This document shows, piece after piece, positions 1 through 47,433 of a stretch of 64,000 nt of DNA. Position numbers and translations under genes: made by a program. Positions within the stretch are counted from its first letter, which is position 1, and each line of letters starts with the position of its first letter. A model generated the notes under the pieces. That model was not told the DNA's origin. It was given only the letters and a program-made list of their open reading frames with translations, and made no database searches. Origin of the DNA: Rebecca billardiae RCC1528 (Eukaryota > Protista > Haptophyta); assembly GCA_965240325.2 (NCBI GenBank), contig OZ251226.1:1488001-1552000 (forward strand), written 5' to 3'.

Positions 1-3000
1 GTCTCCGCTCATGCGCGACATCTTCGAGCGCGCGGACATCTTCGACCTCGCCGACAACGCAGAGCGATGGCTCCCGGCTGCGACGAGGCGAGTCGCGGAG
101 CATGGGTCGGGCGCACGCGTGAGCCATGCGCGCGTCGCGCGCACCCGCAGCGGCGCGGGGCTGACCTCTCGGGCACAGCCGTGGGCGTTGGCGCGCACCT
201 TCGTCGTACACGTGCGTGTACTGGCGCATCGCGCTGTCCATCATCAGCCCCTCCTCCTGCGGGTACGTCTTGATCAGCGCCTTGTACGCATCGCGCGTGA
301 GCGAGTACACGACCGTCTCCGCGCCGCTCGCCGTGCGGCCGTTCTTAAAGTGGCGGATGCTGAAGGTGAAGGACATGCTGCCCACCGTGCTGCCCGACGA
401 GCGCACCTCGAGACCCTCGCCATCCTCAGTGGTCATGCCGACCAGGTTGAGCTGCATCTCGTCCTCGTACATCTCGATGCTGCCCGACTTGATGACGAAG
501 AGCTCGTTGCAGACCTCGCCCATGCGGAAGACGGTCGTCTCCGGCTCGATGCGACGCTCCTTGAGCACCGAGGCGAAGCGATCCTTGAAGCCCTCCGAGC
601 ACTCGGCGAGCAGCGAGCAGCCGCTGATGATGTGCCGGATGGTGTGCTTGGACACCTCGAGCTGGAGCGACATGGGGAGCATGTCGTACACCTGCTCCGA
701 CTGCACGGACGAGAGCGACGCGTCCTTCAGCCGGGCGTGGAAGAACGCCTCGATCTTCGCCTTGAGGTCGCCAGGCACGCGGATGTGCGCGACGTACGAC
801 TGCACGATCTCGAGCTGCGCGCGCTTGGCCACGATCTCGTCGTCCTGCTTCATCACGAGCGCCGAGATCTGGCCGACAGTCCACGCGTACACGGTCATGT
901 TCACGATCATCGCGACCACGAAGAAGAGCAGCTCGGTGTACGTCGCCGGGAGCTGCGTCAGCCCGAGCGACGTCAGCATGGACATGACGAAAAAGAGGCA
1001 CATCAGGTACTGGTTTGCAAACGTCACGGACGAGAGGCGGTCATTGCCGATGTGGTCGTGCTGCGAGTCCACCACTTCCTCATAGTAGCGCAGCTGCGTC
1101 CACCACGTCACCTCGGCCCCTTCGGCCAAGGTCGAGAACGCGCACAGGTTCCAGATGCACGAACCGAGGTGCGCCGCATACAGGAGCACCCCCAGGTACA
1201 TCTGCAGCCCGCTGCGGAGGTCGTCATCGGGACAACGCTTCCTCCACTTGCTGATCGCAGAGCGCAGGTACCGCATGTTGATCATGCGCAGCACGCGCAG
1301 CGTGTACGGCACGAAGGCGGGCGCACCCACGGCGAGCGCGAGGAAGTTGTGCGGCCAGCACGCAAAGCAGTCGAGCGGGAAGTCCCTCGCCAAGTAGTGC
1401 CTGGCGATGCCTGCAGGATCGTAGACAGTGACCGAGTGCTGGTTGATGCTGGACACGCGGAAGCGCAGTGCGATGCGCACGATGTAGAAGATGTCTGCGC
1501 CGATGCCCATGTACAGCAGCGCCTCTGACTGCTCCGCCCTGGTGCCGAAGCAGACGGCGACCGGGATCACAATTGAATCCCACGCAGTCACGTACAGGAA
1601 GAGCGTCTCGAAGAGGCCGAACGCCTTCGAATCGTGACGCACGATGAAGCTTGGCACGGCGGCGGCTGCGGCAGCTGCCGTTGCATCACCGCCGCCGCTG
1701 TTGGCGAGCGCAAGGAGCCGCGTGGACCGAGCCATGCCGAATGCAGCGGCCACGCGCAGGCTCATGCGGCCTTTCGCGTCCAGCTGTCCGAGCAGCGGGG
1801 TGTCCTCCTCAGCGGCACTTACCCGCGCGAGGTCCCTGTCGGCGGCGTCATCCTTGTGCGCGAAGAGGGCAGCGACCAGATCTCGCCATGTCACGTCGGC
1901 CGGCGGCTTCTCAACGACGGTTGTCGTGATGTTCGCAAGCTTGATGCCGTTGGAGAAACCCACCAGGCCGCCATCGCTGCTGCTGTCATCGCTGTCGTTT
2001 CCGTTGCCATCGGCGATGTCGGCCACAGGCGGCGCATGCGGCGTGATGTCCAGGCCGAGGGTTGTCAAGACCCAGTCCTCGAGCAACTCCTTCTTGGTGT
2101 CGGGAGGGATGGCGATGGTCTGCTTCACGTGGTACAGCAGGGCGCCCGTCTGCACAGGGCCGACCGGATCGATGCGCTGCGCTTCGATGTGGTTCTGGAT
2201 GTGGTTTGCCAAAGTAAGCGCCGCCCTGGGCGCGCACATGGCGGTTGCCAGCGCCTCCTTGGCTTGCGCCTCTTGTGCCTGCAAGAAGGCCTCCGGGTCG
2301 TTTGCGAGATCCAGCGTGCCTTCAGCGAGCGTAAGATCACCAGCGGAGGGTATGGCCTGACTCACACAGTTCGCGAGCAGCCACGAAGCCACGCCGACGT
2401 AGAACTGCGCCTCGGTGAGGAACCGCGCCGGGGGTCGCTCCTTCTGCAGCGAGCGACTCAAGTCGTCCGACGAACGCGACTGCGAGTCGCTGCGAATGGT
2501 CACGTCAGAGCCGCTCGCGGAGTCGTCCTCGCTTGACACCTCGCTTGAGTCCGAAGACGAGTTGGAGTCAGAAGGACTTGCTGCGATGCCAGTAGGCAAG
2601 GGCGAATCGTAGGAAGGCACCGATGCCTCACCATAGCCAACGACATCCTCCGTAGAGGGTGGCGGACCCGCCGCCGCGATGTCAGCCAGCATCTCGTCGT
2701 GGTGGTCGGCGAAGCGGTCCACGCCCTGCATGTCCAGCGCGGTCGGCGGCATCGCGGCGGTCGTCTCGAGCGCCTGCTTCAGCAGCTCGTCCTCCGTCTT
2801 GCCCATCTCCTTGGGCAGACGCTCCTTGCGGTGCTTCGGACCCACCTGATCCGAGCGGTGCGACACCTCCACCTCCGACGGCAGCAGCTGCAGCAGCTGA
2901 CCCAGCTTTGCCAACCGCTCCTTCATGTCGCTGCCGCCGCCAACCTCGAACTGCACGCCAAAGCACAGGCGGTACACGCCGTTCGAGTCGTGCACCGGAC

Positions 3001-6000
3001 GCATCGACAGCAGGTTCTGGAACGTCTCGCCGTTCTTGCGGTAGTTGGTGATCTTCACAAAGCAGTCCGCGCCGCGGCGGAGCGTGTCCTGGATGATCGC
3101 CACAGACGCCGGCTCCGTGCGCGGGCCCTGCAAGAAGCGGCAGTTCCGACCCTGCGCCTCGTGCTTCGCAAAGCCGGTCACGCGGCAGAAGTCGCGGTTC
3201 ACGAACAGCATCGGGTTGCCCGGCATCGCCATGTCCGACAGCACGATGCACGCCGGGAACGTCTCCGCGAACGCGACGAACGAGTGGATGAAGCCAGCCA
3301 TGTCCTCCGGGACCTTGTACTTGTCCCAGATCAGGTCCTTGCGCTGCTTGATGCGCTGGCCCGCCACAGAGGCCTCCACGATCGACTCGCACGCCGGCGA
3401 GCGCACGAACCGAGCAAGCGCGTCGCTCGCAAGCTTCTTGCCGATCTCGGACACCTTCTCCTCCACGGCGCGCATGTCCATCGACTTGGCCTGCGCAGAG
3501 CTCAGACCGAGGTGCTTCTCCAGCACGGTGCGCTTACGCACGTCGCGTGACGCGCCCGCCGCCATGCCGCTCAGCTTGCGCGCCTCCGACCAGAACTCGA
3601 GCTCGCGGTCCTCCTTCGTCTCCTTCAAGAACCCGCGGAAGGCGTCGTACGACTGCGGGTCCTCCGTCAGACGCTCCAGGCTCGTCTCAGAATCAAGCGT
3701 CCACTGCAGCTTCGTGAACAGCGACTGCGCCGAGCGGAACTGACGCTCCTTCGCGCCCTCGTCCACGTGCACCACGTCCGGCGTGAACGTCGATGGCTGC
3801 GCAGACGCCGGCATGCGCCGCGGAAGCAGCCCGCGCAGCGTCGACAGCGCCTGCTGCTCCTCCGCCGTCTGCTCCTCCGCGCACGACAGCACGCCCAACG
3901 AGTACCGGTACTCGCCGTTCGTGTCCATCACCGGCGTGAGCGACAGGTCGTTCGTGAAGCGAGAGCCGTTCTTGCGGTAGTTCGTCACCTTCACAAGAAG
4001 CTCTGTCTTCTTGCGCAGCGCGCGGACCATCTTCGACACGATGTTTGGCTCCGTCTGGTCACCCTGCAAGAAGCGGCAGTTCCGGCCCTCCACCTCGTAC
4101 TTCGGGTAGCCGGTCACGCGCGCGAAGCCGCCGTTGCAGTACATCACCGTCACGCCCGGGACCGTCACGTCGGTGATCGCCACCGCGATCTGCAGCGGCT
4201 CCACAGCCGCCTTGAGCGCGCCGAGCCACGTGCCGTCGCCCGCACGAGGTACCGAGCCGCGACCCTCGCCCGCCGCGCGCAGTGCCTCCAAGATCTCCAG
4301 CGTCGGCTGAGGAAGGCTGAACGCGCCGCCGCCCATGCCGCCGCCGCCCATGGCACTCATCGGCTGCTGCTGCTGCATCATCGGCTGCTGCTGCTGCATC
4401 ATCGGCTGCTGCTGCATCATCGGCTGCTGCTGCATCATCGGCTGCTGCATCATCATCGGCTGCTGCTGCTGCTGCATCGGCTGCTGCTGCATCATCGGCT
4501 GCTGCATCCCCATGCCCATCATCTGCGCGGGCGCGGCCGCCATCGTCGGCGCCATCGGCGTCTCCTCAAACGGCAGGCTGCCGCCAGAGATCTCCGCCAT
4601 CATCTCGTCGTGGTGGTCGGCGAAGCGGTCCTCGCCCTGCATGTCGAGCGCGGTCGGCGGCATCGTCGCACTCGACTCGAGCGCCTGCTTCAGCAGCTCG
4701 TCCTCCGTCTTGCCCATCTCCTTGGGCAGACGCTCCTTGCGGTGCTTCGGACCCACCTGATCCGAGCGGTGCGACACCTCCACCTCCGACGGCAGCAGCT
4801 GCAGCAGCTGACCCAGCTTTGCCAACCGCTCCTTCATGTCGCTGCCGCCGCCAACCTCGAACTGCACGCCAAAGCACAGGCGGTACACGCCGTTCGAGTC
4901 GTGCACCGGACGCATCGACAGCAGGTTCTGGAACGTCTCGCCGTTCTTGCGGTAGTTGGTGATCTTCACAAAGCAGTCCGCGCCGCGACGGAGCGTGTCC
5001 TGGATGATCGCCACAGACGCCGGCTCCGTGCGCGGGCCCTGCAAGAAGCGGCAGTTCCGACCCTGCGCCTCGTGCTTCGCAAAGCCCGTCACGCGGCAGA
5101 AGTCGCGGTTCACGAACAACATCGGGTTGCCCGGCATCGCCATGTCCGAAAGCACGATGCACGCCGGGAACGTCTCCGCGAACGCGACGAACGAGTGGAT
5201 GAAGCCAGCCATGTCCTCCGGGACCTTGTACTTGTCCCAGATCAGGTCCTTGCGCTGCTTGATGCGCTGGCCCGCCACAGAGGCCTCCACGATCGACTCG
5301 CACGCCGGCGAGCGCACGAACCGAGCAAGCGCGTCGCTCGCAAGCTTCTTGCCGATCTCGGACACCTTCTCCTCCACGGCGCGCATGTCCATCGACTTGG
5401 CCTGCGCAGAGCTCAGACCGAGGTGCTTCTCCAGCACGGTGCGCTTACGCACGTCGCGTGACGCGCCCGCCGCCATGCCGCTCAGCTTGCGCGCCTCCGA
5501 CCAGAACTCGAGCTCGCGGTCCTCCTTCGTCTCCTTCAAGAACCCGCGGAAGGCGTCGTACGACTGCGGGTCCTCCGTCAGACGCTGCAGGCTCGTCTCA
5601 GAATCAAGCGTCCACTGCAGCTTCGTGAACAGCGACTGCGCCGAGCGGAACTGACGCTCCTTCGCGCCCTCGTCCACGTGCACCACGTCCGCCGTGAACG
5701 TCGATGGCTGCGCAGACGCCGGCATGCGCCGCGGAAGCAGCCCGCGCAGCGTCGACAGCGCCTGCTGCTCCTCCGCCGTCTGCTCCTCCGCGCACGACAG
5801 CACGCCCAACGAGTACCGGTACTCGCCGTTCGTGTCCATCACCGGCGTGAGCGACAGGTCGTTCGTGAAGCGAGAGCCGTTCTTGCGGTAGTTCGTCACC
5901 TTCACAAGAAGCTCCTTCTTCTTGCGCAGCGCGCGGACCATCTTCGACACGACGATCGGCTCCGTCCGGTCGCCCTGCAAGAAGCGGCAGTTCCGGCCCT

Positions 6001-9000
6001 CCACCTCGTACTTCGGGTAGCCGGTCACGCGAGCGAAGCCGCCGTTGCAGTACATCACCGTCACGCCCGGCACCGTCATGTCCGTGATCGCCACCGCGAT
6101 CTGCAGCGGCTCCACAGCCGCCTTGAGCGCGCCGAGCCACGTGCCGTCGCCCGCACGAGGTACCGAGCCGCGACCCTCGCCCGCCGCGCGCAGTGCCTCC
6201 AAGATCTCCAGCGTCGGCTGAGGCAGGCTGAACGCGCCGCCGCCGCCGCCACCGCCCACGCCGCCGCCGCCCATGGCACTCATCGGCTGATGCGGCTGCA
6301 TCGGCTGCTGCTGCATCATCATCTGCTGCTGCTGCATCATCGGCTGCTGCATCCCCATGCCCATCATCTGCGTGGGCGCGGCCGCCATTGTCGGCGCCAT
6401 CGGCGTCTCCTCAAACGGCAGGCTGCCGCCAGAGATCTCCGCCATCATCTCGTCGTGGTGGTCGGCGAAGCGGTCCTCGCCCTGCATGTCGAGCGCGGTC
6501 GGCGGCATCGTCGCACTCGACTCGAGCGCCTGCTTCAGCAGCTCGTCCTCCGTCTTGCCCATCTCCTTGGGCAGACGCTCCTTGCGGTGCTTCGGACCCA
6601 CCTGATCCGAGCGGTGCGACACCTCCACCTCCGACGGCAGCAGCTGCAGCAGCTGACCCAGCTTTGCCAACCGCTCCTTCATGTCGCTGCCGCCGCCAAC
6701 CTCGAACTGCACGCCAAAGCACAGGCGGTACACGCCGTTCGAGTCGTGCACCGGACGCATCGACAGCAGGTTCTGGAACGTCTCGCCGTTCTTGCGGTAG
6801 TTGGTGATCTTCACAAAGCAGTCCGCGCCGCGGCGGAGCGTGTCCTGGATGATCGCCACAGACGCCGGCTCCGTGCGCGGGCCCTGCAAGAAGCGGCAGT
6901 TCCGACCCTGCGCCTCGTGCTTCGCAAAGCCGGTCACGCGGCAGAAGTCGCGGTTCACGAACAACATCGGGTTGCCCGGCATCGCCATGTCCGAAAGCAC
7001 GATGCACGCCGGGAACGTCTCCGCGAACGCGACGAACGAGTGGATGAAGCCAGCCATGTCCTCCGGGACCTTGTACTTGTCCCAGATCAGGTCCTTGCGC
7101 TGCTTGATGCGCTGGCCCGCCACAGAGGCCTCCACGATCGACTCGCACGCCGGCGAGCGCACGAACCGAGCAAGCGCGTCGCTCGCAAGCTTCTTGCCGA
7201 TCTCGGACACCTTCTCCTCCACGGCGCGCATGTCCATCGACTTGGCCTGCGCAGAGCTCAGACCGAGGTGCTTCTCCAGCACGGTGCGCTTACGCACGTC
7301 GCGTGACGCGCCCGCCGCCATGCCGCTCAGCTTGCGCGCCTCCGACCAGAACTCGAGCTCGCGGTCCTCCTTCGTCTCCTTCAAGAACCCGCGGAAGGCG
7401 TCGTACGACTGCGGGTCCTCCGTCAGACGCTGCAGGCTCGTCTCAGAATCAAGCGTCCACTGCAGCTTCGTGAACAGCGACTGCGCCGAGCGGAACTGAC
7501 GCTCCTTCGCGCCCTCGTCCACGTGCACCACGTCCGCCGTGAACGTCGACGGCTGCGCAGACGCCGGCATGCGCCGCGGAAGCAGCCCGCGCAGCGTCGA
7601 CAGCGCCTGCTGCTCCTCCGCCGTCTGCTCCTCCGCGCACGACAGCACGCCCAACGAGTACCGGTACTCGCCGTTCGTGTCCATCACCGGCGTGAGCGAC
7701 AGGTCGTTCGTGAAGCGAGAGCCGTTCTTGCGGTAGTTCGTCACCTTCACAAGAAGCTCCTTCTTCTTGCGCAGCGCGCGGACCATCTTCGACACGATGT
7801 TCGGCTCCGTCCGGTCGCCCTGCAAGAAGCGGCAGTTCCGGCCCTCCACCTCGTACTTCGGGTAGCCGGTCACGCGAGCGAAGCCGCCGTTGCAGTACAT
7901 CACCGTCACGCCCGGCACCGTCATGTCCGTGATCGCAACCGCGATCTGCAGCGGCTCCACAGCCGCCTTGAGCGCGCCGAGCCACGTGCCGTCGCCCGCA
8001 TGAGGTACCGAGCCGCGACCCTCGCCCGCCGCGCGCAGTGCCTCCAAGATCTCCAGCGTCGGCTGAGGCAGGCTGAACGCGCCGCCGCCGCCGCCGCCGC
8101 CCATGCCGCCGCCGCCCATGGCACTCATCGGCTGCTGCGGCTGCATCGGCTGCTGCTGCTGCTGCATCGGCTGCTGCTGCTGCATCGGCTGCTGCTGCTG
8201 CTGCATCGGCTGCTGCTGCATCATCGGCTGCTGCATCCCCATGCCCATCATCTGCGCGGGCGCGGCCGCCATCGTCGGCGCCATCGGCGTCTCCTCAAAC
8301 GGCAGGCTGCCGCCGGAGATCTCCGCCATCATCTCGTCGTGGTGGTCGGCGAAGCGGTCCTCGCCCTGCATGTCGAGCGCGGTCGGCGGCATCGTCGCAC
8401 TCGACTCGAGCGCCTGCTTCAGCAGCTCGTCCTCCGTCTTGCCCATCTCCTTGGGCAGACGCTCCTTGCGGTGCTTCGGACCCACCTGATCCGAGCGGTG
8501 CGACACCTCCACCTCCGACGGCAGCAGCTGCAGCAGCTGACCCAGCTTCGCCAACCGCTCCTTCATGTCGCTGCCGCCGCCAACCTCGAACTGCACGCCA
8601 AAGCACAGGCGGTACACGCCGTTCGAGTCATGCACCGGACGCATCGACAGCAGGTTCTGGAACGTCTCGCCGTTCTTGCGGTAGTTGGTGATCTTCACAA
8701 AGCAGTCCGCGCCGCGACGGAGCGTGTCCTGGATGATCGCCACAGACGCCGGCTCCGTGCGCGGGCCCTGCAAGAAGCGGCAGTTCCGACCCTGCGCCTC
8801 GTGCTTCGCAAAGCCCGTCACGCGGCAGAAGTCGCGGTTCACGAACAACATCGGGTTGCCCGGCATCGCCATGTCCGAAAGCACGATGCACGCCGGGAAC
8901 GTCTCCGCGAACGCGACGAACGAGTGGATGAAGCCAGCCATGTCCTCCGGGACCTTGTACTTGTCCCAGATCAGGTCCTTGCGCTGCTTGATGCGCTGGC

Positions 9001-12000
9001 CCGCCACAGAGGCCTCCACGATCGACTCGCACGCCGGCGAGCGCACGAACCGAGCAAGCGCGTCGCTCGCAAGCTTCTTGCCGATCTCGGACACCTTCTC
9101 CTCCACGGCGCGCATGTCCATCGACTTGGCCTGCGCAGAGCTCAGACCGAGGTGCTTCTCCAGCACGGTGCGCTTACGCACGTCGCGTGACGCGCCCGCC
9201 GCCATGCCGCTCAGCTTGCGCGCCTCCGACCAGAACTCGAGCTCGCGGTCCTCCTTCGTCTCCTTCAAGAACCCGCGGAAGGCGTCGTACGACTGCGGGT
9301 CCTCCGTCAGACGCTGCAGGCTCGTCTCAGAATCAAGCGTCCACTGCAGCTTCGTGAACAGCGACTGCGCCGAGCGGAACTGACGCTCCTTCGCGCCCTC
9401 GTCCACGTGCACCACGTCCGCCGTGAACGTCGATGGCTGCGCAGACGCCGGCATGCGCCGCGGAAGCAGCCCGCGCAGCGTCGACAGCGCCTGCTGCTCC
9501 TCCGCCGTCTGCTCCTCCGCGCACGACAGCACGCCCAACGAGTACCGGTACTCGCCGTTCGTGTCCATCACCGGCGTGAGCGACAGGTCGTTCGTGAAGC
9601 GAGAGCCGTTCTTGCGGTAGTTCGTCACCTTCACAAGAAGCTCCTTCTTCTTGCGCAGCGCGCGGACCATCTTCGATACGATGTTCGGCTCCGTCCGGTC
9701 GCCCTGCAAGAAGCGGCAGTTCCGGCCCTCCACCTCGTACTTCGGGTAGCCGGTCACGCGCGCGAAGCCGCCGTTGCAGTACATCACCGTCACGCCCGGC
9801 ACCGTCATGTCCGTGATCGCCACCGCGATCTGCAGCGGCTCCACAGCCGCCTTGAGCGCGCCGAGCCACGTGCCGTCGCCCGCACGAGGTACCGAGCCGC
9901 GACCCTCGCCCGCCGCGCGCAGTGCCTCCAAGATCTCCAGCGTCGGCTGAGGAAGGCTGAACGCGCCGCGGCCGCCGCCGCCGCCCATGCCGCCGCCGCC
10001 CATGGCACTCATCGGCTGCTGCGGCTGCATCGGCTGCTGCTGCTGCTGCATCGGCTGCTGCTGCATCATCGGCTGCTGCTGCTGCTGCATCATCGGCTGC
10101 TGCATCCCCATGCCCATCATCTGCGCGGGCGCGGCCGCCATCGTCGGCGCCATCGGCGTCTCCTCAAACGGCAGGCTGCCGCCCGAGATCTCCGCCATCA
10201 TCTCGTCGTGGTGGTCGGCGAAGCGGTCCTCGCCCTGCATGTCGAGCGCGGTCGGCGGCATCGTCGCACTCGACTCGAGCGCCTGCTTCAGCAGCTCGTC
10301 CTCCGTCTTGCCCATCTCCTTGGGCAGACGCTCCTTGCGGTGCTTCGGACCCACCTGATCCGAGCGGTGCGACACCTCCACCTCCGACGGCAGCAGCTGC
10401 AGCAGCTGACCCAGCTTTGCCAACCGCTCCTTCATGTCGCTGCCGCCGCCAACCTCGAACTGCACGCCAAAGCACAGGCGGTACACGCCGTTCGAGTCGT
10501 GCACCGGACGCATCGACAGCAGGTTCTGGAACGTCTCGCCGTTCTTGCGGTAGTTGGTGATCTTCACAAAGCAGTCCGCGCCGCGACGGAGCGTGTCCTG
10601 GATGATCGCCACAGACGCCGGCTCCGTGCGCGGGCCCTGCAAGAAGCGGCAGTTCCGACCCTGCGCCTCGTGCTTCGCAAAGCCCGTCACGCGGCAGAAG
10701 TCGCGGTTCACGAACAACATCGGGTTGCCCGGCATCGCCATGTCCGAAAGCACGATGCACGCCGGGAACGTCTCCGCGAACGCGACGAACGAGTGGATGA
10801 AGCCAGCCATGTCCTCCGGGACCTTGTACTTGTCCCAGATCAGGTCCTTGCGCTGCTTGATGCGCTGGCCCGCCACAGAGGCCTCCACGATCGACTCACA
10901 CGCCGGCGAGCGCACGAACCGAGCAAGCGCGTCGCTCGCAAGCTTCTTGCCGATCTCGGACACCTTCTCCTCCACGGCGCGCATGTCCATCGACTTGGCC
11001 TGCGCAGAGCTCAGACCGAGGTGCTTCTCCAGCACGGTGCGCTTACGCACGTCGCGTGACGCGCCCGCCGCCATGCCGCTCAGCTTGCGCGCCTCCGACC
11101 AGAACTCGAGCTCGCGGTCCTCCTTCGTCTCCTTCAAGAACCCGCGGAAGGCGTCGTACGACTGCGGGTCCTCCGTCAGACGCTGCAGGCTCGTCTCAGA
11201 ATCAAGCGTCCACTGCAGCTTCGTGAACAGCGACTGCGCCGAGCGGAACTGACGCTCCTTCGCGCCCTCGTCCACGTGCACCACGTCCGCCGTGAACGTC
11301 GACGGCTGCGCAGACGCCGGCATGCGCCGCGGAAGCAGCCCGCGCAGCGTCGACAGCGCCTGCTGCTCCTCCGCCGTCTGCTCCTCCGCGCACGACAGCA
11401 CGCCCAGCGAGTACCGGTACTCGCCGTTCGTGTCCATCACCGGCGTGAGCGACAGGTCGTTCGTGAAGCGAGAGCCGTTCTTGCGGTAGTTCGTCACCTT
11501 CACAAGAAGCTCCTTCTTCTTGCGCAGCGCGCGGACCATCTTCGACACGACGTTCGGCTCCGTCCGGTCGCCCTGCAAGAAGCGGCAGTTCCGGCCCTCC
11601 ACCTCGTACTTCGGGTAGCCGGTCACGCGAGCGAAGCCGCCGTTGCAGTACATCACCGTCACGCCCGGCACCGTCATGTCCGTGATCGCCACCGCGATCT
11701 GCAGCGGCTCCACAGCCGCCTTGAGCGCGCCGAGCCACGTGCCGTCGCCCGCACGAGGTACCGAGCCGCGACCCTCGCCCGCCGCGCGCAGTGCCTCCAA
11801 GATCTCCAGCGTCGGCTGAGGAAGGCTGAACGCGCCGCCGCCGCCGCCGCCGCCCATGCCGCCGCCGCCCATGGCGCTCATCGGCTGCTGCGGCTGCATC
11901 GGCTGCTGCTGCTGCTGCATCGGCTGCTGCTGCTGCATCGGCTGCTGCTGCATCATCGGCTGCTGCTGCTGCATCATCGGCTGCTGCTGCATCATCGGCT

Positions 12001-27000: not shown

Positions 27001-30000
27001 TCACGCCCGGCACCGTCATGTCCGTGATCGCCACCGCGATCTGCAGCGGCTCCACAGCCGCCTTGAGCGCGCCGAGCCACGTGCCGTCGCCCACATTCGG
27101 CATGCTTCCTTGGCCCTCTCCTGCAGCGCGAAGTGCCTGGAGGATCTCTGTCGTCTGCATCGGGAGCATGCTCTCCGTGGGCATGTTCTGGCTGTAGCCG
27201 ATCCCGTTGGTGACGCTGTTCGCTGCAATCGATGGTGCGGTGGGCTGGGAGTACGCGTGCCCTTCGCCTTGCTGGCTCTGCTGCACCGCCAGAAAGGGCT
27301 GCTGAGCCGCATCGCTGTTCAGCTGGCCATTTTGCTGCGCGCCAGCATACCCATTGGCTGCAGCCCAGGGAAGAAAAGTCGACACGTGCTCCTCGTCTTC
27401 TGGCGCAGGTATTTCTGCTATGTAGTCACCGTCAGCTGCGATGTCCGCGAGCATCTCGTCGTGGTGGTCGGCGTACCTGTCCACGCCCTGCATGTCGCTC
27501 GCCGCCTCGGGTACAACTTCTCGAGCCTCGAGCGCGCGCTGCAGCAGCTCGTCCTCCGTCTTGCCAAAGTCGGCGTTGGATGTCCGTTTGCGGTGCTTTG
27601 GCCCGACCCGCTCTGATCTGTGCTGCACCTCGACCTCCGACGGCAGCAGCTGCAGCAGCTGACCCAGCTTCGCCAACCGCTCCTTCAAGTCGCTGCCGCC
27701 CGCCACCTCGAACTGCACGCCAAAGCACAAGCGGTACACGCCGTTCGAGTCGTGCAGCGGGCGCATCGACAGCAGGTTCTGGAACGTCTCGCCGTTCTTG
27801 CGGTAGTTGGTGATCTTCACGAAGCAGTCCGCGCCGCGACGGAGCGTGTCCTGGATGATCGCCACAGACGCCGGCTCCGTGCGCGGGCCCTGCAAGAAGC
27901 GGCAGTTCCGACCCTGCGCCTCGCGCTTCGCGAAGCCGGTCACGCGGCAGAACTCGCGGTTCACGAACAGCATCGGGTTGCCCGGCATCGCCATGTCCGA
28001 CAGCACGATGCACACCTTGAACGTCTCCGCGAACGCGACGAACGAGTGGATGAAGCCAGACAGGTCATCCGGCACCTTGTACTTGTCCCAGATCAGGTCC
28101 TTGCGCTGCTTGATCCGCTGGCTGCCCACGGCCGCATCGACGATCGGCTCGCACGCTGATGACTTGATGAACTCGGGCAGCACCTCGCGAGCCAGCTTCA
28201 TCTTGATCTCAGCGGCCCTCCTGTCCACGCTCGAGAAGTCGAGTGCCTTGGCCTGCGCCGTACTCAGCCCGAGGTACTTCTCGCAGATCGTGCGCTTGAG
28301 GATGTCGCGGCTTGCCCCAGACATGCCGCCGAGCTTGCGCGACTCCAGCCAGAATTCGAACTCGTTCGCCTCCGCCGTGCCGGACAGGTACGAACGCAAC
28401 GCTGCCAGTGCATTCGAGTCTACCACAAGCCAGTCCAAACAAGCTTGGGCTTCCAGCGTCCACTGCAGCTTCGTGAAGAGCACCTGAGCAGCACGGAACT
28501 GCTTGTCCTTCGCCATGTCGTTCACAACGACGTCGGGAGCGAAAGTCTGCGGCTGGGCGTCCGCGGGCATGCGCCGCGGCAGCAGCTCGCGCAGCGCCGA
28601 CAGCGCCTGCTGCTCCTCCGCCGTCTGCTCCTCCGCGCACGACAGCACGCCCAGCGAGTACCGGTACTCGCCGTTCGTGTCCATCACCGGCGTGAGCGAC
28701 AGGTCGTTCGTGAAGCGAGAGCCGTCCTTGCGGTAGTTGGTCACCTGCACGTGCAGCTCCTTCTTCTTGCGCAGCGCGCGGACCATCTGCGAGACGATGT
28801 TCGGCTCCGTCTGCTCGCCCTGCAAGAAGCGGCAGTTCCGGCCCTCGACCTCGTGCTTCGGGTAGCCCGTCACGCGCGTGAAGCCGTCGTTGCAGTACTG
28901 CACGATCACGCCCGGCACCGTCATGTCCGTGACGGCGACCGCGAACGGCAGGGCATCGACCGCCGCCTTGAGCGCGCCGAGCCACGTGCCGTCACCCGCT
29001 GTCGGCATGCCGCCACGGCCGTCGCCCGCGCCCAACAGAGCCTGCAAAAGGTCGATCGTGTCTTGGGGCAAGGCCGATGCCTCACCCTCGAAGTTGTCGA
29101 GTCCAGCGTCGCCTTCTTGCGCGATGTCTGCGAGCATCTCGTCGTGGTGGTCGGCGTACCTGTCCACGCCCTGCATGTCGCTCGCCGCCTCGGGTACGAC
29201 TTCTCGAGCCTCGAGCGCGCGCTGCAGCAGCTCGTCCTCCGTCTTGCCAAAGTCGGCGTTGGATGTCCGTTTGCGGTGCTTTGGCCCGACCCGCTCTGAT
29301 CTGTGCTGCACCTCGACCTCCGACGGCAGCAGCTGCAGCAGCTGACCCAGCTTCGCCAACCGCTCCTTCAAGTCGCTGCCGCCCGCCACCTCGAACTGCA
29401 CGCCAAAGCACAAGCGGTACACGCCGTTCGAGTCGTGCACCGGACGCATCGACAGCAGGTTCTGGAACGTCTCGCCGTTCTTGCGGTAGTTGGTGATCTT
29501 CACGAAGCAGTCCGCGCCGCGACGGAGCGTGTCCTGGATGATCGCCACAGACGCCGGCTCCGTGCGCGGGCCCTGCAAGAAGCGGCAGTTCCGACCCTGC
29601 GCCTCGCGCTTCGCGAAGCCGGTCACGCGGCAGAACTCGCGGTTCACGAACAGCATCGGATTGCCCGGCATCGCCATGTCCGACAGCACGATGCACACCT
29701 TGAACGTCTCCGCGAACGCGACGAACGAGTGGATGAAGCCAGACAGGTCATCCGGCACCTTGTACTTGTCCCAGATCAGGTCCTTGCGCTGCTTGATGCG
29801 CTGGCTGCCCACGGCCGCATCGACGATCGGCTCGCACGCTGATGACTTGATGAACTCGGGCAGCACCTCGCGAGCCAGCTTCATCTTGATCTCAGCGGCC
29901 CTCCTGTCCACGCTCGAGAAGTCGAGTGCCTTGGCCTGCGCCGTACTCAGCCCGAGGTACTTCTCGCAGATCGTGCGCTTGAGGATGTCGCGGCTCGCCC

Positions 30001-33000
30001 CAGACATGCCGCCGAGCTTGCGCGACTCCAGCCAGAATTCGAACTCGTTCGCCTCCGCCGTGCCGGACAGGTACGAACGCATGGCAGACAAAGCCTTTGC
30101 ATCCTGCACGAGCCGATCCAAGCTCGCTTCGGCGTCGAGCGTCCACTGCAGCTTCGTGAAGAGCACCTGAGCAGCACGGAACTGCTTGTCCTTCGCCATG
30201 TCGTTCACAACGACGTCGGGAGCGAAAGTCTGCGGCTGGGCGTCCGCGGGCATGCGCCGCGGCAGCAGCTCGCGCAGCGCCGACAGCGCCTGCTGCTCCT
30301 CCGCCGTCTGCTCCTCCGCGCACGACAGCACGCCCAACGAGTACCGGTACTGGCCGTTCGTGTCCATCACCGGCGTGAGCGACAGGTCGTTCGTGAAGCG
30401 AGAGCCGTCCTTGCGGTAGTTCGTCACCTGCACGTGCAGCTCCTTCTTCTTGCGCAGCGCGCGGACCATCTGCGAGACGATGTTCGGCTCCGTCTGCTCG
30501 CCCTGCAAGAAGCGGCAGTTCCGGCCCTCGACCTCGTGCTTCGGGTAGCCGGTCACGCGCGTGAAGCCGTCGTTGCAGTACTGCACGATCACGCCCGGCA
30601 CCGTCATGTCCGTGACGGCGACCGCGAACGGCAGGGCATCGACCGCCGCCTTGAGCGCGCCGAGCCACGTGCCGTCGCCCACGCTCGGCATCGCGCCCTT
30701 GCCATCACCTGCTGCGCGAAGCGCGAGTAAGATGTCCGCCGATGGCCGCGGAACGCCCGCCGAAGGGATGTCGGCGCCGACACGAGAGGCAACGACGCCC
30801 ATAGGGCTGGATGGAGCGAGGTGGGAAGGCGCAGTCTGTGGTGCAGCAATGGCCGGGGCACCAACAGCTCTGGAGGGCACGCCCGTGCCAGTCTGTGGCG
30901 TCTCGTCGAACGGCAGGCTGCCGCCCGTGATCTCCGCCATCATCTCGTCGTGGTGGTCGGCGAAGCGGTCGGCGCCCTGCATGTCCTGAGCTCCGCTGGG
31001 CATCACTGCGATCTCCTCCATGGCCACCTTGAGCATCTCGGCCTCGGACTTGCCCATCTCCTTGGGAAGTCGCTCCTTGCGGTGCTTCGGCCCGACCCGC
31101 TCCGATCTGTGCTGCACCTGCACCTCGGACGGCAGCAGCTGCAGCAGCTGACCCAGCTTCGCCAACCGCTCCTTCATGTCGCTCCCGCCCGCCACCTCGA
31201 ACTGCACGCCAAAGCACAGGCGGTACACGCCGTTCGAGTCGTGCACCGGACGCATCGACAGCAGGTTCTGGAACGTCTCGCCGTTCTTGCGGTAGTTGGT
31301 GATCTTCACAAAGCAGTCCGCGCCGCGACGGAGCGTGTCCTGGATGATCGCCACAGACGCCGGCTCCGTGCGCGGGCCCTGCAAGAAGCGGCAGTTCCGC
31401 CCCTGCGCCTCGTGCTTCGCAAAGCCCGTCACGCGGCAGAACTCGCGGTTCACGAACAGCATGGCGTTGCCAGGCATCGCCATGTCCGAAAGCACGATGC
31501 ACGCCGGGAACGTCTCCGCGAACGCGACGAACGAGTGGATGAAGCCAGCCAGGTCCTCCGGCACCTTGTACTTGTCCCAGATCAGCTCCTTGCGCTGCTT
31601 GATGCGCTGGCTGCCCACGGCCGCATCGACGATCGGCTCGCATGCGGGCGAGCGCACAAACCGCGGCAGCGCGTCGCCTGCAAGCTTCTTCCCGAGTTCG
31701 ACCACTTTGCGCGCGACACCGTCCATGTCCATCGCCTTCGCCTGCGCGCTCGTCATCTTGAGGTACTTCTCGCAGATCTTGCGCTTGTGCACGTCGCGCG
31801 AGCCGCCCTTCATGCTGGCCAGCTTGCGCGCCTCGATCCAGAACTCGAGCTCGTTCTCCTCACCGGTCGGCTTCAGGAACGAGCGGAGCGCGTTGAGTGC
31901 TGAAGAGTCATCCGCCAAGCGCGTAAGTGTCGCATCGGCGTCGAGCGTCCACTGCAGCTTGGTGAAGAGCAGCTGCGCGTCGCGGAACTGCCTGTCCTTC
32001 GCCTCGTCGTCGACAGCCTCCTCCTTCGCGAAGGCGGTCGGCTGTGCAGCTGCGGGCATGCGCCGCGGCAGCAGCTCGCGCAGCGCCGACAGCGCCTGCT
32101 GCTCCCCGGTGGACTGCGTCTCCGCGCACGACAGCACGCCCAACGAGTACCGGTACTCGCCGTTCGTGTCCATCACCGGCGTGAGCGACAGGTCGTTCGT
32201 GAAGCGAGAGCCGTCCTTGCGGTAGTTCGTCACCTGCACGTGCAGCTCCTTCTTCTTGCGCAGCGCGCGGACCATCTGCGAGACGATGTTCGGCTCCGTC
32301 CGGTCGCCCTGCAGGAAGCGGCAGTTCCGGCCCTCGACCTCGTGCTTCGGGTACCCCGTCACGCGCGTGAAGCCGGCGTTGCAGTACATCACCGTCACAC
32401 CCGGCACCGTCATGTCCGTGATCGCCACCGCGATCGGCAAGGTGTCGACCGCCGCCTTGAGCGCGCCGAGCCACGTGCCATCTCCGGCAGTCGAGACATC
32501 GCTGGCCCCGTCGGCCGTAGCCTGGAGGGCTCGGAGGAGCTCCACCGAGGCGGACGGCAGCTGGAAGTCCGTTGGATCAGCATGGCTGCCGCCGGACGCA
32601 GCCGGTACTGGAGCGAGCTCGACGCCGTTGATCTCCGCGAGCATCTCGTCGTGGTGGTCGGCGTAGCGGTCGGCGCCCTGCATGTCCTGAGCTCCGCTGG
32701 GCATCACCGCGATCTCCTCCATGGCCACCTTGAGCATCTCGGCCTCGGACTTGCCCGTCTCCGCGGGCAGCCGCTGCTTGCGGTGCTTCGGCCCGACCCG
32801 CTCCGACCTGTGCTGCACCTCGACCTCCGACGGCAGCAGCTCCAGCAGCTGACCCAGCTTCGCCAACCGCTCCTTCAGGTCGCTCCCGCCCGCCACCTCG
32901 AACTGCACGCCAAAGCACAGGCGGTACACGCCGTTCGAGTCGTGCACCGGACGCATCGACAGCAGGTTCTGGAACGTCTCGCCGTTCTTGCGGTAGTTGG

Positions 33001-36000
33001 TGATCTTCACGAAGCAGTCCGCGCCGCGACGGAGCGTGTCCTGGATGATCGCCACAGACGCCGGCTCCGTGCGCGGGCCCTGCAAGAAGCGGCAGTTCCG
33101 ACCCTGCGCCTCGTGCTTCGCAAAGCCGGTCACGCGGCAGAAGTCGCGGTTCACGAACAGCATCGGGTTGCCGGGCAGCGCCATGTCCGACAGCACGATG
33201 CACGCTGGGAACGTCTCCGCGAACGCGACGAACGAGTGGATGAAGCCAGCCATGTCCTCCGGGACCTTGTACTTGTCCCAGATCAGGTCCTTGCGCTGCT
33301 TGATCCGCTGGCTGCCCACGGCCGCCTCGACGATCGGCTCGCATGCGGGCGAGCGCACAAACCGCGGCAACGCGTCGCTCGCGAGCTTCTTGCCAAGCTC
33401 AGCCACCCTCTGGTCGACGCCGTCCATGTCCATCGCCTTCGCCTGCGCGCTCGTCATCTTGAGGTACTTCTCGCAGATCTTGCGCTTGTGCACGTCGCGC
33501 GAGCCGCCCTTCATGCTGGCCAGCTTGCGCGCCTCGATCCAGAACTCGAGCTCGTCGTCCTCGCCGGTCTCCTTGAGGAACGAGCTGAACGCATCGCGAG
33601 CGTGCTGATCGGTCGTCAGCCGCTCCAGGCTCGACTCCGAGTCGAGCGTCCACTGCAGCTTGGTGAAGAGCAGCTGCGCCGAGCGAAACTGCCTGTCCTT
33701 CGCCTCGTCGTCGACAGCCTCCTCCTTCGCGAAGGCGGTCGGCTGTGCAGCTGCGGGCATGCGCCGCGGCAGCAGCTCGCGCAGCGCCGACAGCGCCTGC
33801 TGCTCCTCCGCCGTCTGCTCCTCCGCGCACGACAGCACGCCCAGCGAGTACCGGTACTGGCCGTTCGTGTCCATCACCGGTGTGAGCGACAGGTCGTTCG
33901 TGAAGCGAGAGCCGTTCTTGCGGTAGTTCGTCACCTGCACGTGCAGCTCCTTCTTCTTGCGCAGCGCGCGGACCATCTGCGAGACGATGTTCGGCTCCGT
34001 CTGCTCGCCCTGCAGGAAGCGGCAGTTCCGGCCCTCGACCTCGTGCTTCGGGTAGCCGGACACGCGCGTGAAGCCGTCGTTGCAGTGCATCACCGTCACA
34101 CCCGGCACCGTCATGTCCGTGATCGCCACCGCGATCTGCAGTGGCTCGACCGCCGCCTTGAGCGCGCTGAGCCACGTGCCGTCACCCACGACGGGCATGC
34201 CGCCCTGTCCATCCCCGGCTGCGCGGAGGGCGCGGAGGATGTCCACGGTCGGCCTTGGCAACGAAGCGGACCCGATTTCGTCGGGGCCTGCGCTCGGCCC
34301 GCTCGTTGCGCCATCGTCATCATCGATGGCCTGCGCTGCCATATTCGCCGCCGCCATGACCTTCGTCGCGTCCTTAAGATGCGTGCGCAGCGACTCGAGC
34401 TCCTCGCTGCCCACCTCCGTCTGCAGCTGCCTCACGTCGCGCAGGCGGATCGTGTTCTTCTTCTTCGGCGCGAAGACGCGATGCAGGGTTGTCAGGACGT
34501 ACGCTGTGCTCGCCAACGCCTCGAAAGCGCTGGCGCTCTCGCCCTCTTCCGCGGCCGCCTCGCCCGTGCTGCGCACGTTGCGGCCGGCCAGAATGCCGAT
34601 GAAGCGCTTCGAGCAGAAGAGCACGACGCAGCCGAGGTCGGAGATGAAGAAGGGCGCCGTCGACTCGGACGATGGCTGGATGTTCGTCATGCCGGCGAGC
34701 GCGTTGAGCGAGGCGGCGAGCACGCTTGGGCGACGCGCAGAAACGCTCGGGCGGCGGGGCGCTGCAGGTGATGCGCTGCCAGCGTCAGCCATGGGCTGGC
34801 TGCCGCGGCGCGCCGTGCCGCTCACGTGCTGCGTGACGGCGAAAAGCGAGCTGCCGACAATCGAGTTGGTGCGCAACGCGCGTCGCAGAGCGTGATCCTC
34901 GGGTGGCACCGGAGCGTCATGCGGTGATGTGCTCGGCCGGTGCGGCGCACTGTCGCCAGCAAACGCCCTGAGCCCGGTGTAGATCTCGTCCATCACCGCA
35001 TTGGCCTCGGCGTAGGTCAGCTGGCACTCATTCATCAGGATGTCTTCGAGTGCGAGATTCTCTTGCCGCAGGCGCTCGTTGATTGGCAGCGAGTCGCGCG
35101 CCTCCGCCGAGAGCTTCTTCATGAAGAGGTCACGCAGCTTGGCGAGGCCCTCCTCCGCGCGCGGCAGTCGGAGGATGGAGCGCACGAAGAGCTTCGCCGC
35201 CTCCCCGGATGCGGCCACCGCTTCTTCTTCCTCGGCGTTGTCGTCAATCGAGCCCGGCGGTGTTTCGCCATCGAAGTCCGACTCCTGGGACGACATGTCG
35301 TCGAGATCGGACTGGCTGCAGCTGTCGCCGTCGGAGTCCTGCGTCTCCTTCGAGTAGTTGGCAATCCAGTCGTCCGTCGCCTTGTCGAGATAGCGTGCGA
35401 GAATGCGTGCGGCTCGGGTAAACATGTGCACATGCTTGCTGAGCGCCTTGAGGCTGACGGTGATCGGCTGCCGCAGCGCCTGCTTGGTCTCGCGCAGCGT
35501 CATCCGTCGCTCGCCGTGCTCCTTGAGCTTGCGGTCGATGCGGTACAGATTGACCGACTTCGCCTCCTCGTAAGCTTCGCGTAGCTCGTCATCGTCTGCG
35601 TAGCCCTCGGGCAGGTGCGCTCCGCACATCTGTACGATGAGCGCGGCCGTGTCGAGGTTGGTCTCGAGCGCGGGCACGAGCGGCGACGCGCCCCAGCGGT
35701 CGAGCGCCATCACGTCCGCGCGCGCGGCGACAAGCACAGCCGCCCCCGAGATGGCGCCCGCAGATGCGACGCGGTGGAAGGCGGTGCGTCCGTCGTAATC
35801 ACTGGCGTCCACCCCCACGCCCATGTCGACGAGGAAGCGCAGAATGTCGACATCCGATGCGACCGCTGCGTCGCGCAGGGCCTTCTCCATGCGCACCGGG
35901 TCCGCGCGCGAGTTGGCCTCGGCGAGCATGCGCGCGACGTGGAGGTGCTGGTTCTGGATGGCGTCGTCGATCGGCTTGCGCCCGCGCTTGTCCTCCGCGT

Positions 36001-36625
36001 TCACGTCCGCGAGGTGCGACATCAGGTGCTCGACGACGCGCACGTTGCCGTCCGCCGCGGCGATGTGCAGCGCGGTGCGGTCGTCGTAGTTCTTTGCCTG
36101 CACGTCGATGCCGTACGCGAGGATCATCGACATGTACGTGAGGTCGCCGTCACTCGCCGCCTTGTGCATCCACGCGGCGGGGTGCTCGACGTCGATCTCC
36201 GCGCCGAAGCTGCTCAGCACGCTCGCCACGTTGTCATGCCGCATATCAATCGCGTCGCGCATCGGCGTGCAGCCCCAGCGGTCCTTGGCGTTGACGTCGG
36301 CGCCGAGCTCGCACAGCAGCTGCACCACCTTGAAGCTGCCGTCGGCGGCGGCGAGGTGCATCGTCGTGCGCGCGTCGTAGCCCGACATGTTCAGGTCGAA
36401 GCCGCGGCCGGCGAGCGTGCGCACAGTCTCGACGTCGCCCTGCATCGCCGCCGCCGACATCTGCGCGAAGGCCGCCTGGTTGCGCTCGATGATGGTCTGG
36501 CGGATCTTCTCCTTGAGCTCCTCCGCCTCCTCGTCCGCGTTCTTGGCATCGTCGTCGTCAGCATCACCGCCAGCACCGCCGGCGGCACCGGTGCCAGCTG
36601 CGCCGGCAGCGCCACCGCTTGCAGT

Positions 36626-36691
<66 letters not shown>

Positions 36692-38617: not shown

Positions 38618-38990
38618 CGTGGCGAGGAGAGAAGGCGAGCTGACAAGCGCCGGGCAGGGCGGCTGGCCCAGATCACCCGCAGGAGATCGCCTCGGCTCTC
38701 CTCCTTTTCCAGACGGGACCGCGGCCGATCGTGATTCGTGAATTCTCGCGCCGACTAGAGACCTCCTCGCCCGCGGAAGCAAGCTTTCGACGGCCTAGGT
38801 AGGCGGTTCGGGCAAGTTCGTCAATGTCGCCGAGACTAGCGGGCGTATGTTTCGGAGCCCGGGCGAAGCCGCGGCGGCCCGGCGAGTTCTGCAGGCGAAA
38901 AAAGCAGCTGTTACGATACCGTTTGACAAGACAGACTCACGAACAGCTATTTCAAGGGCGTTCCCGGGATCCTGCCACACGCTCCCGAAA

Positions 38991-40052: not shown

Positions 40053-40364
40053 TGTCAAAGGAATCGCCAATCTACAGTGATTTCCAATTTCCAATCCAAC
40101 ATTTTACTCGCAGTCACACAGTGGCGGCGCGACCGCTGCGGCGGCGCTCGCACAAAATCCTCCAAAATCAACCTGAACCTCATCCTAAAATACAGCAGGA
40201 CAGCATGGCTGGCGGCGGCATCTCGAAGTATTCCAGATGATTCTGAATGAACGCGGAAACATGAGCCGAGCACCACGAACACGTTGTGCTCCGCACCGCA
40301 AGGCAAGAGCCGAAGCCGTCGACCGACCTCGCGACCGTCAAGCCTCGAGACGCGTTCCCTGACA
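40053..40364 (+). repeat. 5' LTR
   Basis: Direct repeat of 43193-43504 with TG...CA ends. Confidence 0.95.
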
Positions 40365-46081: not shown

Positions 46082-47433
46082 GTCGAGAAAAGGAAGCACG
46101 GACGGCCGTTTCGGCTCTCGATGCTGTTTCGCACGTGGTGTGGGCAAGGCCCTTGATGAGCCGTCCGTGGGCAGCCTGACTAAGCCGGCCTGTGGCAGGC
46201 AGCATGGCGGCGCAGGGGTGCCGCCGCGCAAAGCATGCGTCGCAGCAGTGGCCGCGCAGTGCCATACATGCGTCCTGGTGTGCGTCGCACGGCCGCATGT
46301 ACGTCATGCGCGGGCGGACATGTGGGTCAGCGGGCCTCTTGGGATCCAGGGGCAAGCAAGGGCTGGGGCAAGGGCTGGGTGTGTAGTCACGTATTTGCGC
46401 GGACAGCATTCGAGCGCCTGCTGCCCGGCGACAGCGATGGAAACTGACGATGTGACGAGGCGCGACTGCTGCAACCCCTCGACTCGAAGAGGCCCGCAGA
46501 TCCACTTCTCAGCCCACGCGCGCCCACAGCATCTAAACGAAGCGACGAAGTCGGATGATGCCAACGCTGGCTGGCGACCGCACCCAAACCCAGGGCATGA
46601 CCCCACCCTACCAAACTCAGCAGGGTGGGAGCCTGGTCGCGATGAGAACTTCTGAACTTTCCCAGCGAGGGAGGGGCCGCCATAGCGCCGCAGCGGCTCC
46701 TGGCCGCGCTGCGCTCAGCCTCTGCGCCACGGCCGCGCGTGCACGGACGACCCTGAACCCGATGGCGCGATCGAACCGACTTTCAACTTAGCCGCTGGAT
46801 AGATGCCCGCTGAAGCCACAGCCAACCGGAACAACTGGTATCAGCTGACAGTCATCCTTGACAACCGGAGCGCACATCAGGATCACTGGCCCTGGCCGAC
46901 CGCAAGGAGCGCAGCCACACGACGCCGCACAGGTACCACTCACCACGGATCATCCGCTGACTGCTATACCACTGACTGTACAAAGAGGCAGCATCAGCGG
47001 CAGCAGCATCAGATGCCTCAGCCTCAGCACGCGCGCCCGGGGGCACGCGCCCCCGGGGGCGCTTCAGCACACGACTACCATACTACGACTTGCTATTATT
47101 CTTCATCGAAAGTTCGAGCAGACGACGGCTGACGATGCGTGGCATCGCGATCACAGCCATGGCGCGCACGCGTCGAAGCCAGACGGTGCTGTGCGTCTTC
47201 TGTCGTCTGGCTTCCGACGAGACTCGGCCGAGTCGGCGATGATGGAGTTATGGGTACGCGGGAGCGCGGTGATCCTGGTGGTGTTCGTCTGCGTTCGTCC
47301 ACGCTGCTGCTGACCGACCGATCCGCTGCACGGCTCTGATGATCCACTGACGCTGGCCCGTTGATGCATGCCACTGCGATGCTATGATACAAAAAATACG
47401 ACATCTGCTCATCATCATCGATCATCATCATCA

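Follow-up and report, generated by a model that had tools for sequence, protein, structure and literature searches.

A tandemly repeated pair of Gln- and Leu-type LOV domains flanking an RGS-like bundle in a giant channel-like protein of the haptophyte Rebecca billardiae

A single minus-strand open reading frame in a 64,000-nucleotide stretch of the genome of the haptophyte Rebecca billardiae RCC1528 (contig OZ251226.1, here C8; C8:1488001-1552000, hereafter the window) encodes 34 LOV domains of two types. Seventeen of these (LOV-B) carry Leu at the position of the active-site glutamine, Gln513 of the oat phototropin 1 LOV2 domain (AsLOV2), and the other 17 (LOV-A) retain the Gln. Judged by the residues they keep, LOV-A is a canonical LOV domain and LOV-B a natural Gln-to-Leu LOV that preserves the adduct-forming and flavin-binding residues. 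The pairing appears to be inherited from a widespread haptophyte family of helmchrome-like LOV-RGS-LOV photoreceptors. We read the alternation, at about even confidence, as the footprint of a two-sensor module that was tandemly amplified between two ion-channel-like halves, and in which both LOVs would be photoactive but not equivalent. Four points go beyond a preliminary description of this stretch, namely that the pairing is haptophyte family-wide, that the alternation came about via duplication, that the Gln is dispensable and that Gln and Leu have flipped within the B clade.

The frame (codons from 38794 minus 3k) is stop-free over 12,931 codons inside the window and reaches 12,933 codons when the flanking 10 kb is included, with the stop located 4-6 bases before the window start; its first ATG lies at 38617. 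From the N-terminus, the protein comprises a channel-like transmembrane segment with a GYG motif, a cNMP-binding domain, ankyrin repeats, 17 units of LOV-B, RGS-like domain and LOV-A, and a C-terminal part with Ion_trans and cNMP-binding domains (Table 1). Pfam scans of the head, the unit and the tail returned no kinase domain. The best named relatives among database homologs are from Pavlovales sp. CCMP2436 and Prymnesium. The genome amounts to 72 Mb in 41 contigs at ~66% GC, and an origin from a bacterial gene was dismissed in view of this size and contig number together with the eukaryotic domains.

In the translated frame, GRNCRFLQ occurs 34 times, GVQFEV and GVLSC occur 17 times each, and the two LOV types follow each other in a strict B, A, B, A order from 34033 down to 2942. 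Pfam places an RGS domain (PF00615) between every LOV-B and its next LOV-A. The spacing from LOV-B to LOV-A is constant at 310-312 residues, whereas that from LOV-A to the next LOV-B varies between 251 and 328 residues and consists of low-complexity, Ala/Asp-rich sequence. The structural unit is therefore formed by LOV-B, the RGS-like bundle and LOV-A, and the units resemble beads on a flexible string. The preliminary description had placed a Gln codon at 2951-2953 and a Leu codon at 3887-3889 of the last unit, and had reported alternation in all 17 units. Both coordinates proved exact on the minus-strand translation and the alternation is confirmed throughout, although the units are copies of one module. 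Since the array arose by tandem duplication of this module, its 17 units represent one observation inherited 17 times rather than independent evidence, and the alternation follows automatically from the duplication of a two-LOV unit. The pattern goes beyond chance only because paralogs and other species show it too. An error of a few units in the repeat copy number could be present and would leave this conclusion unaffected.

The codons of the GRNCRFLQG motif are type-specific across the array (window 2930-34153), being GGT CGG in LOV-A and GGC CGG/CGC in LOV-B. This indicates that gene conversion has not evened out the differences between LOV-A and LOV-B, while the units have been homogenised among themselves.

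Both LOV types are matched by PF13426. When a LOV-A and a LOV-B were compared by phmmer with all chains in the PDB, they matched aureochrome, phototropin and bacterial LOV structures with E-values of 1e-23 to 1e-27. Both domains align with AsLOV2 (PDB code 2v0u) over ranges of equal length and at an identical offset (query index = chain index minus 6), and this comparison, which had been proposed as a check on the assignment, places the Leu of LOV-B at the Gln513 site. In the phmmer alignments the same Leu is paired with the conserved Gln in the 'G-V-Q' motif of miniSOG, aureochrome and a Meiothermus LOV. AsLOV2 numbers are given here as the alignment column plus 407; the 2v0u chain presumably carries three extra N-terminal residues, and the numbering was verified by Cys450 landing on the motif Cys.

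LOV-A and LOV-B are identical at 51 of 114 positions. The GXNCRFLQG motif with its adduct-forming Cys is present in 34/34 LOVs of the window and in 92/92 LOVs of the three arrays found in this genome, and the same counts apply to Cys450, Arg451, Gln454, Asn482 and Asn492. The earlier statement that both types keep the Cys and the two flavin-binding Asn (Cys450, Asn482 and Asn492) is thus borne out for all 34 domains. The active-site Gln513 is found in all LOV-A, and all LOV-B have Leu instead. LOV-B corresponds in this respect to the definition of a LOV-deltaQ domain, with Leu at the active-site Gln position and the remaining core residues intact.

A single unit of 476 residues was modelled with AlphaFold2 from 47 homologs; the model is confident, with a predicted local distance difference test (pLDDT) value of 89.7 and a predicted template modelling (pTM) score of 0.71. 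In it, an A'-alpha and a J-alpha-like helix flank the LOV-B core, residues 165-296 form a helical bundle, and the LOV-A core likewise has an A'-alpha and a J-alpha helix of its own. The LOV-B fold is predicted with a confidence equal to that of LOV-A. A Foldseek search of the PDB with this model returned LOV crystal structures with TMt values of up to 0.95; the matches for the unit as a whole were confined to individual LOV domains and to unrelated fusions of LOV with high r.m.s.d. (root-mean-square deviation), and no LOV/RGS-like/LOV assembly was among them.

Two paralogous arrays in the same genome share the architecture and the alternation, one with 19 units on C8 just beyond the window and the other with 10 units on contig C3. 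A genome-wide pattern search located 94 GRNCRFLQG sites, 92 of them in the three arrays and 2 in a stand-alone LOV-RGS-LOV gene (C8:1385898-1386859, plus strand), ~100 kb upstream of the window on the same contig. The Leu codon is CTG in 36/36 LOV-B of the C8 arrays and CTC in 10/10 of the C3 array, so that a synonymous codon change has left Leu in place; two steps separate CTC from CAG, the codon used for Gln. Between arrays, the ratio of nonsynonymous to synonymous substitution rates (dN/dS) ranges from 0.12 to 0.30 for LOV-A and from 0.27 to 0.34 for LOV-B, which shows that both types are under purifying selection. When the arrays are compared with the stand-alone gene, values of 0.7-0.9 are obtained for LOV-B against ~0.3 for LOV-A. 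The higher ratio points to faster protein change in B, with dS probably compressed by codon bias.

The alternation is also found in Pavlovales sp. CCMP2436, where a contig end encodes at least 10 LOVs in alternating B(Leu), A(Gln) order, one A being hidden in an assembly gap. Public gene models split this array into several 'partial' proteins, and annotation has probably overlooked another giant array here. The CCMP2436 array (GCA_026770615.1, MU631518.1, bases 1-17258 reversed) is interrupted by N gaps and continues up to the end of the contig.

The wider family was sampled with the best 120 database homologs and the stand-alone gene, which together contain 243 LOV domains. At positions 450 and 513, 139 A-type domains have Cys/Gln, while 46 B-type domains have Cys/Leu and 24 have Cys/Gln; a few carry Ile, Met, His, Ala, Ser or Trp. 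The order B(Leu) then A(Gln) recurs in ~45 two-LOV proteins among the best 120 homologs, one from a Prymnesium metagenome-assembled genome (MAG) and the rest environmental. Gln is present throughout, in both LOVs, in the stramenopile helmchrome-type proteins (Ochromonadaceae, Chromulina, Scytosiphon, Aureococcus, Tribonema). A haptophyte-wide Leu is accordingly to be read as Pavlovales sp. CCMP2436 plus the Prymnesium MAG, most Leu-type homologs being environmental sequences. A maximum-likelihood tree of 208 LOV domains, calculated with the Gln/Leu column removed and rooted at the midpoint, sets a B clade of 58 rows (42 Leu, 13 Gln, 3 other) apart from the rest, with a weak support of only 65 for the basal split; the A-type LOVs form the starred clade of 124 rows, 117 with Gln. 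The core residues C450, Q454, N482 and N492 undergo 0-3 changes in the B clade. Leu is, on these data, the majority state of haptophyte B-type LOVs, old enough to span Pavlovales and Prymnesium, yet not immutable.

The 513 site is not the only one at which the two types differ. The array LOV-B have Ala instead of Cys at position 414, Ala instead of Val at 416, Val instead of Met at 427 and Leu instead of Met at 496, in addition to Leu instead of Gln at 513, while both types have Phe at 434 (AsLOV2 numbering; the A-type column is very uniform). Asn414, the partner of Gln513 in oat LOV2, is therefore found in neither type. LOV-A is 76-86% identical to its homologs and has 8 variable columns inside the window's array, whereas the values for LOV-B are 50-73% and 25 columns.

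Engineered receptors provide a guide to what such residues may do. AsLOV2 Q513L remains able to form the adduct; its spectrum is blue-shifted, its recovery is ~22-fold slower (k = 6.6e-4 vs 1.43e-2 per s), and half of the light-induced change in circular dichroism remains. In YF1, the Q123L variant shows a ~10-fold slower recovery and needs less light to switch, and most residues can stand in for the Gln; signalling by NmPAL Q347L is no weaker than that of the wild type (PMC9098866). The active-site Gln is dispensable for LOV signalling (PMC9098866). The preliminary description had stated that Gln513 relays the signal and that Q-to-L exchange alters spectrum, recovery and signalling; its second part agrees with these data (PMC9098866), whereas its first part has been overtaken by the finding that the Gln is dispensable. 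At the neighbouring positions, the AsLOV2 lifetime of 43 s in the wild type rises to 961 s in N414C and 1427 s in N414A, recovery is very slow in the double mutants N414A/V416A and N414L/Q513L, and exchanges at position 427 accelerate it (PMC10751770).

On the strength of the residues kept, both LOV types of the array are predicted to be photoactive. LOV-A would serve as the main output switch, using the canonical glutamine lever to act on or through the RGS-like bundle and the J-alpha helix. It is the more conserved domain of the two, directly follows the bundle, and is flanked by an A'-alpha and a J-alpha helix of its own. With Cys414 and Gln513 it would be a canonical sensor, possibly also a fairly slow one. 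LOV-B, in which Ala414, Ala416 and Leu513 call for an analogy with the N414A, V416A and Q513L mutants, would signal without glutamine, with a blue-shifted spectrum, slow dark recovery, saturation at lower light and weaker coupling. It could thus be an integrating or modulating sensor, in the manner of LOV1 relative to LOV2 in phototropins. The proposal that LOV-A and LOV-B have different kinetics or roles is partly supported, as it fits the mutant data, the residues at 414 and 416 and the faster evolution of LOV-B; a wider dynamic range or adaptation arising from the pairing is plausible speculation.

It has to be weighed against this two-sensor reading that the net kinetics of LOV-B are unpredictable, because Val427 pulls toward faster recovery, and that mutant effects in AsLOV2 are context-dependent. 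Co-evolution with Leu513 was tested for Ala416, M434, L425, A460 and T477: Ala416 accompanies Leu513 in 27/42 Leu-type B LOVs vs 1/13 of the Gln-type, but these counts contain only 3 independent contrasts, which leaves the test without power and the coupling of Ala416 and Leu513 as a lead only. The Leu change might have little functional effect, given the near-normal signalling seen in Leu variants of some receptors (PMC9098866). A search of public sequencing runs returned one run, with 9% of sampled words, whose contigs are short fragments, a few of them identical and the others 85-97% alike; this run is evidence neither for expression nor for silence, and its fragments are uninformative on transcription, strand and the Leu codon. 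Within the 58-row B clade, parsimony requires ~8 changes at the 513 site (Leu, Gln, Ile, Met, His). Finally, at the position of the array Leu, the stand-alone paralog has Gln (RYSIGVQS) in its B-type LOV. In the tree this LOV is the sister of the array LOV-B, with the CCMP2436 Leu-LOVs outside, at a branch support of only 89-96, and its Gln may be a reversion.

The changes at 513, together with a conservation rank of 42/114 columns for this site in the B clade, speak for near-neutral tolerance, in which the B-type site would accept several residues, Leu would have reached fixation in an ancestor through drift and then been passed on passively as units were duplicated and gene-converted, and any difference between the two LOVs would not be due to 513. 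The Gln of the stand-alone paralog, in an otherwise B-type LOV, and the replaceability of the residue in YF1 and NmPAL (PMC9098866) agree with this explanation, and many array units are near-identical and thus add no independent constraint. On the other hand, Leu or another aliphatic residue is retained in most B-type LOVs of Pavlovales and Prymnesium, through the synonymous codon change described above. Moreover, slower recovery and a spectral shift were seen in every published Gln-to-Leu variant examined (PMC9098866), which makes a kinetic effect hard to avoid. We consider drift at a tolerant site possible, though on the whole unlikely.

A more elaborate version of the two-sensor reading is a two-timescale photon integrator. 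The slow, sensitive Leu-LOV would set the gain or memory of the fast Gln-LOV via the RGS-like bundle, and the 17 units, placed in series in the tether that links the two channel halves, would convert light history into graded channel gating. We regard this version as doubtful.

LOV-B could also be a degenerate, non-signalling PAS scaffold serving dimerisation or spacing, with LOV-A as the sole light sensor of each unit. Its faster evolution compared with LOV-A, the dN/dS of 0.7-0.9 against the stand-alone B-type LOV, and the loss of the equivalents of Asn414, Val416 and Arg467 along with the Gln would be in line with such a role. However, the GRNCRFLQG Cys, Arg451, Gln454, Asn482 and Asn492 are invariant in 46/46 array LOV-B and in the 42/42 Leu-type B LOVs of the tree, which would be unexpected had the photochemistry been lost. 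LOVs that naturally lack the Gln can function as genuine photoreceptors (PMC9098866), and the AlphaFold2 model folds LOV-B as confidently as LOV-A, all of which makes the scaffold improbable.

That the repeat is an assembly expansion or the gene is dead, leaving the pattern without biological meaning, is barely credible: eight units are near-identical at 1,920 bp and no RNA-bearing run was found, the sole matching public run consisting of short fragments, but a 38.8-kb stop-free frame at ~66% GC is not kept by chance, three paralogs share a common architecture with dN/dS well below 1, and the independent assembly of another species (CCMP2436) contains the same alternating array.

Among known systems, the closest are haptophyte helmchrome-like sequences with LOV and a single RGS, which were detected in Pavlovophyceae and Prymnesiophyceae metatranscriptomes and presented there as undescribed sequences whose role was unknown (Coesel et al. 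2021, PMC8017926). Helmchrome, a flagellar protein of brown algae and other stramenopiles, and the helmchrome-like proteins combine LOV and RGS in one polypeptide, as here, and the homologs carry the same Pfam pair; the stand-alone haptophyte helmchrome-like proteins also share the LOV-RGS-LOV order of the module. The helmchrome-type proteins of Ochromonadaceae, Chromulina, Scytosiphon and Aureococcus are more distant homologs than those of Pavlovales and Prymnesium. Stramenopile helmchrome is a stand-alone protein with two RGS and two LOV domains (PMC8017926), whereas here one RGS-like domain accompanies each two LOVs and 17 modules are joined in a giant channel-like protein. With one RGS-like domain per two LOVs, the module fits the haptophyte 'single RGS' variant better than strict stramenopile helmchrome. 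The stramenopile relatives have Gln in both LOVs, in contrast to the Leu of the first LOV here, and the active-site glutamine is not mentioned in PMC8017926.

Natural Gln-less LOVs number ~350, mostly with Leu or Ile, and one case, a bacterial Met-containing LOV-GGDEF protein, has been tested (Dietler et al. 2022, PMC9098866). These LOV-deltaQ receptors resemble LOV-B in having the core LOV residues without the active-site Gln, and Leu is among their two commonest natural replacements. The available part of the supplement text of Dietler et al. contains neither haptophyte names nor 'RGS'; the alignment file may fall outside this part, so that their absence is unproven. The engineered variants AsLOV2 Q513L, YF1 Q123L and miniSOG Q103L have the same substitution as LOV-B at the same aligned position, and searches of the PDB by sequence and fold matched LOV-B to two of them, Q513L (7pgz) and Q103L (7qf5). 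They represent a single laboratory change in a Gln-adapted background, however, whereas LOV-B is natural and also has Ala414, Ala416 and Val427.

Phototropins likewise contain two non-equivalent, Cys-bearing LOVs per polypeptide, one LOV being the main switch and the other a modulator. They differ from the module in having Gln in both LOVs and a Ser/Thr kinase effector; the module lacks a kinase, has its two LOVs separated by an RGS-like bundle and occurs in many copies. The fungal protein BcLOV4 has an RGS domain directly N-terminal to a canonical LOV, like the RGS-like/LOV-A half of the unit, but it has one LOV, a C-terminal DUF and light-switched binding to membrane lipids, and lacks both a Leu-type LOV and repetition (PMC6099885). 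No description of a conserved Leu-LOV/Gln-LOV pair on either side of an RGS-like domain, or of its 17-fold repetition, was found in the literature searched.

Table 1. Features of the giant frame, with positions in the window.
Feature	Position	Strand	Parts	Evidence
Giant frame	1..38794	(-)		translation, flanking genome, Pfam
N-terminal head	34160..38794	(-)	transmembrane/pore-like segment with GYG, cNMP_binding, ankyrin repeats, spacer before first LOV-B	Pfam, translation
Unit 1 (diverged)	32882..34153	(-)	LOV-B 33812-34153 (Leu 33833-33835), RGS-like 33311-33706, LOV-A 32882-33223 (Gln 32903-32905)	
Unit 2 (diverged)	31181..32452	(-)	LOV-B 32111-32452 (Leu 32132-32134), LOV-A 31181-31522 (Gln 31202-31204)	
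Unit 3 (diverged)	29375..30646	(-)	LOV-B 30305-30646 (Leu 30326-30328), LOV-A 29375-29716 (Gln 29396-29398)	
Unit 4 (diverged)	27692..28963	(-)	LOV-B 28622-28963 (Leu 28643-28645), LOV-A 27692-28033 (Gln 27713-27715)	
Units 5-12 (near-identical, exact 1,920-bp period)	12341..27058	(-)	LOV-B starts 27058 minus 1920 x n	
Units 5-12, Leu codons	26738-40, 24818-20, 22898-900, 20978-80, 19058-60, 17138-40, 15218-20, 13298-300	(-)		
Units 5-12, Gln codons	25802-04, 23882-84, 21962-64, 20042-44, 18122-24, 16202-04, 14282-84, 12362-64	(-)		
Unit 13	10439..11716	(-)	LOV-B 11375-11716 (Leu 11396-11398), LOV-A 10439-10780 (Gln 10460-10462)	
Unit 14	8570..9847	(-)	LOV-B 9506-9847 (Leu 9527-9529), LOV-A 8570-8911 (Gln 8591-8593)	
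Unit 15	6686..7963	(-)	LOV-B 7622-7963 (Leu 7643-7645), LOV-A 6686-7027 (Gln 6707-6709)	
Unit 16	4841..6118	(-)	LOV-B 5777-6118 (Leu 5798-5800), LOV-A 4841-5182 (Gln 4862-4864)	
Unit 17	2930..4207	(-)	LOV-B 3866-4207 (Leu 3887-3889), RGS-like 3365-3760, LOV-A 2930-3271 (Gln 2951-2953)	
C-terminal tail after last LOV-A	1..2929	(-)	J-alpha-like helix, acidic/Ser-rich spacer, Ion_trans (PF00520), cNMP_binding (PF00027)	Pfam, translation

Two stretches of the head stand out from their surroundings. Near the first cNMP-binding domain, an Arg/Ala/Pro-rich stretch at 36900-37050 (minus strand, frame residues ~590-640) is unlike the flanking domain sequence and may be an in-frame intron or an insertion. 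Between that domain and the ankyrin repeats, ~40 Gly/Ser/Ala codons (poly-Gly) occupy 36600-36720 on the same strand.

The remainder of the window contains other long open frames. A 3,501-codon frame at 47434-57939 (minus strand) has VPS13 N-terminal and VAB domains, as in a VPS13-like lipid-transfer protein, and the GC content reaches ~80% around 54-56 kb. Two further frames, at 40286-42931 (plus strand, 881 codons) and 43570-46134 (minus strand, 854 codons), have no Pfam match; the former sits in an A-rich patch of lower GC content (55-60%) that is distinct from its surroundings.

The active-site Gln was long the textbook relay of LOV signalling and was shown to be dispensable in 2022. The family described here represents a conserved natural design in which a Leu-LOV stands beside a Gln-LOV in one module, and it has natural controls built in, with Gln in the B-type LOV of the paralog and Ile, Met or His in relatives. 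The role of Gln-less LOVs in nature thereby becomes directly testable with small soluble domains, and the pair could provide optogenetics with matched slow and fast parts. If the photon-integrator version were true, the module would achieve a wide dynamic range and adaptation without a transcriptional step, and the haptophyte Leu-LOVs would be the first eukaryotic model of glutamine-independent LOV signalling shaped by selection. For the organism itself, this gene, in which a LOV array is joined with channel modules, is a candidate for the haptophyte blue-light receptor.

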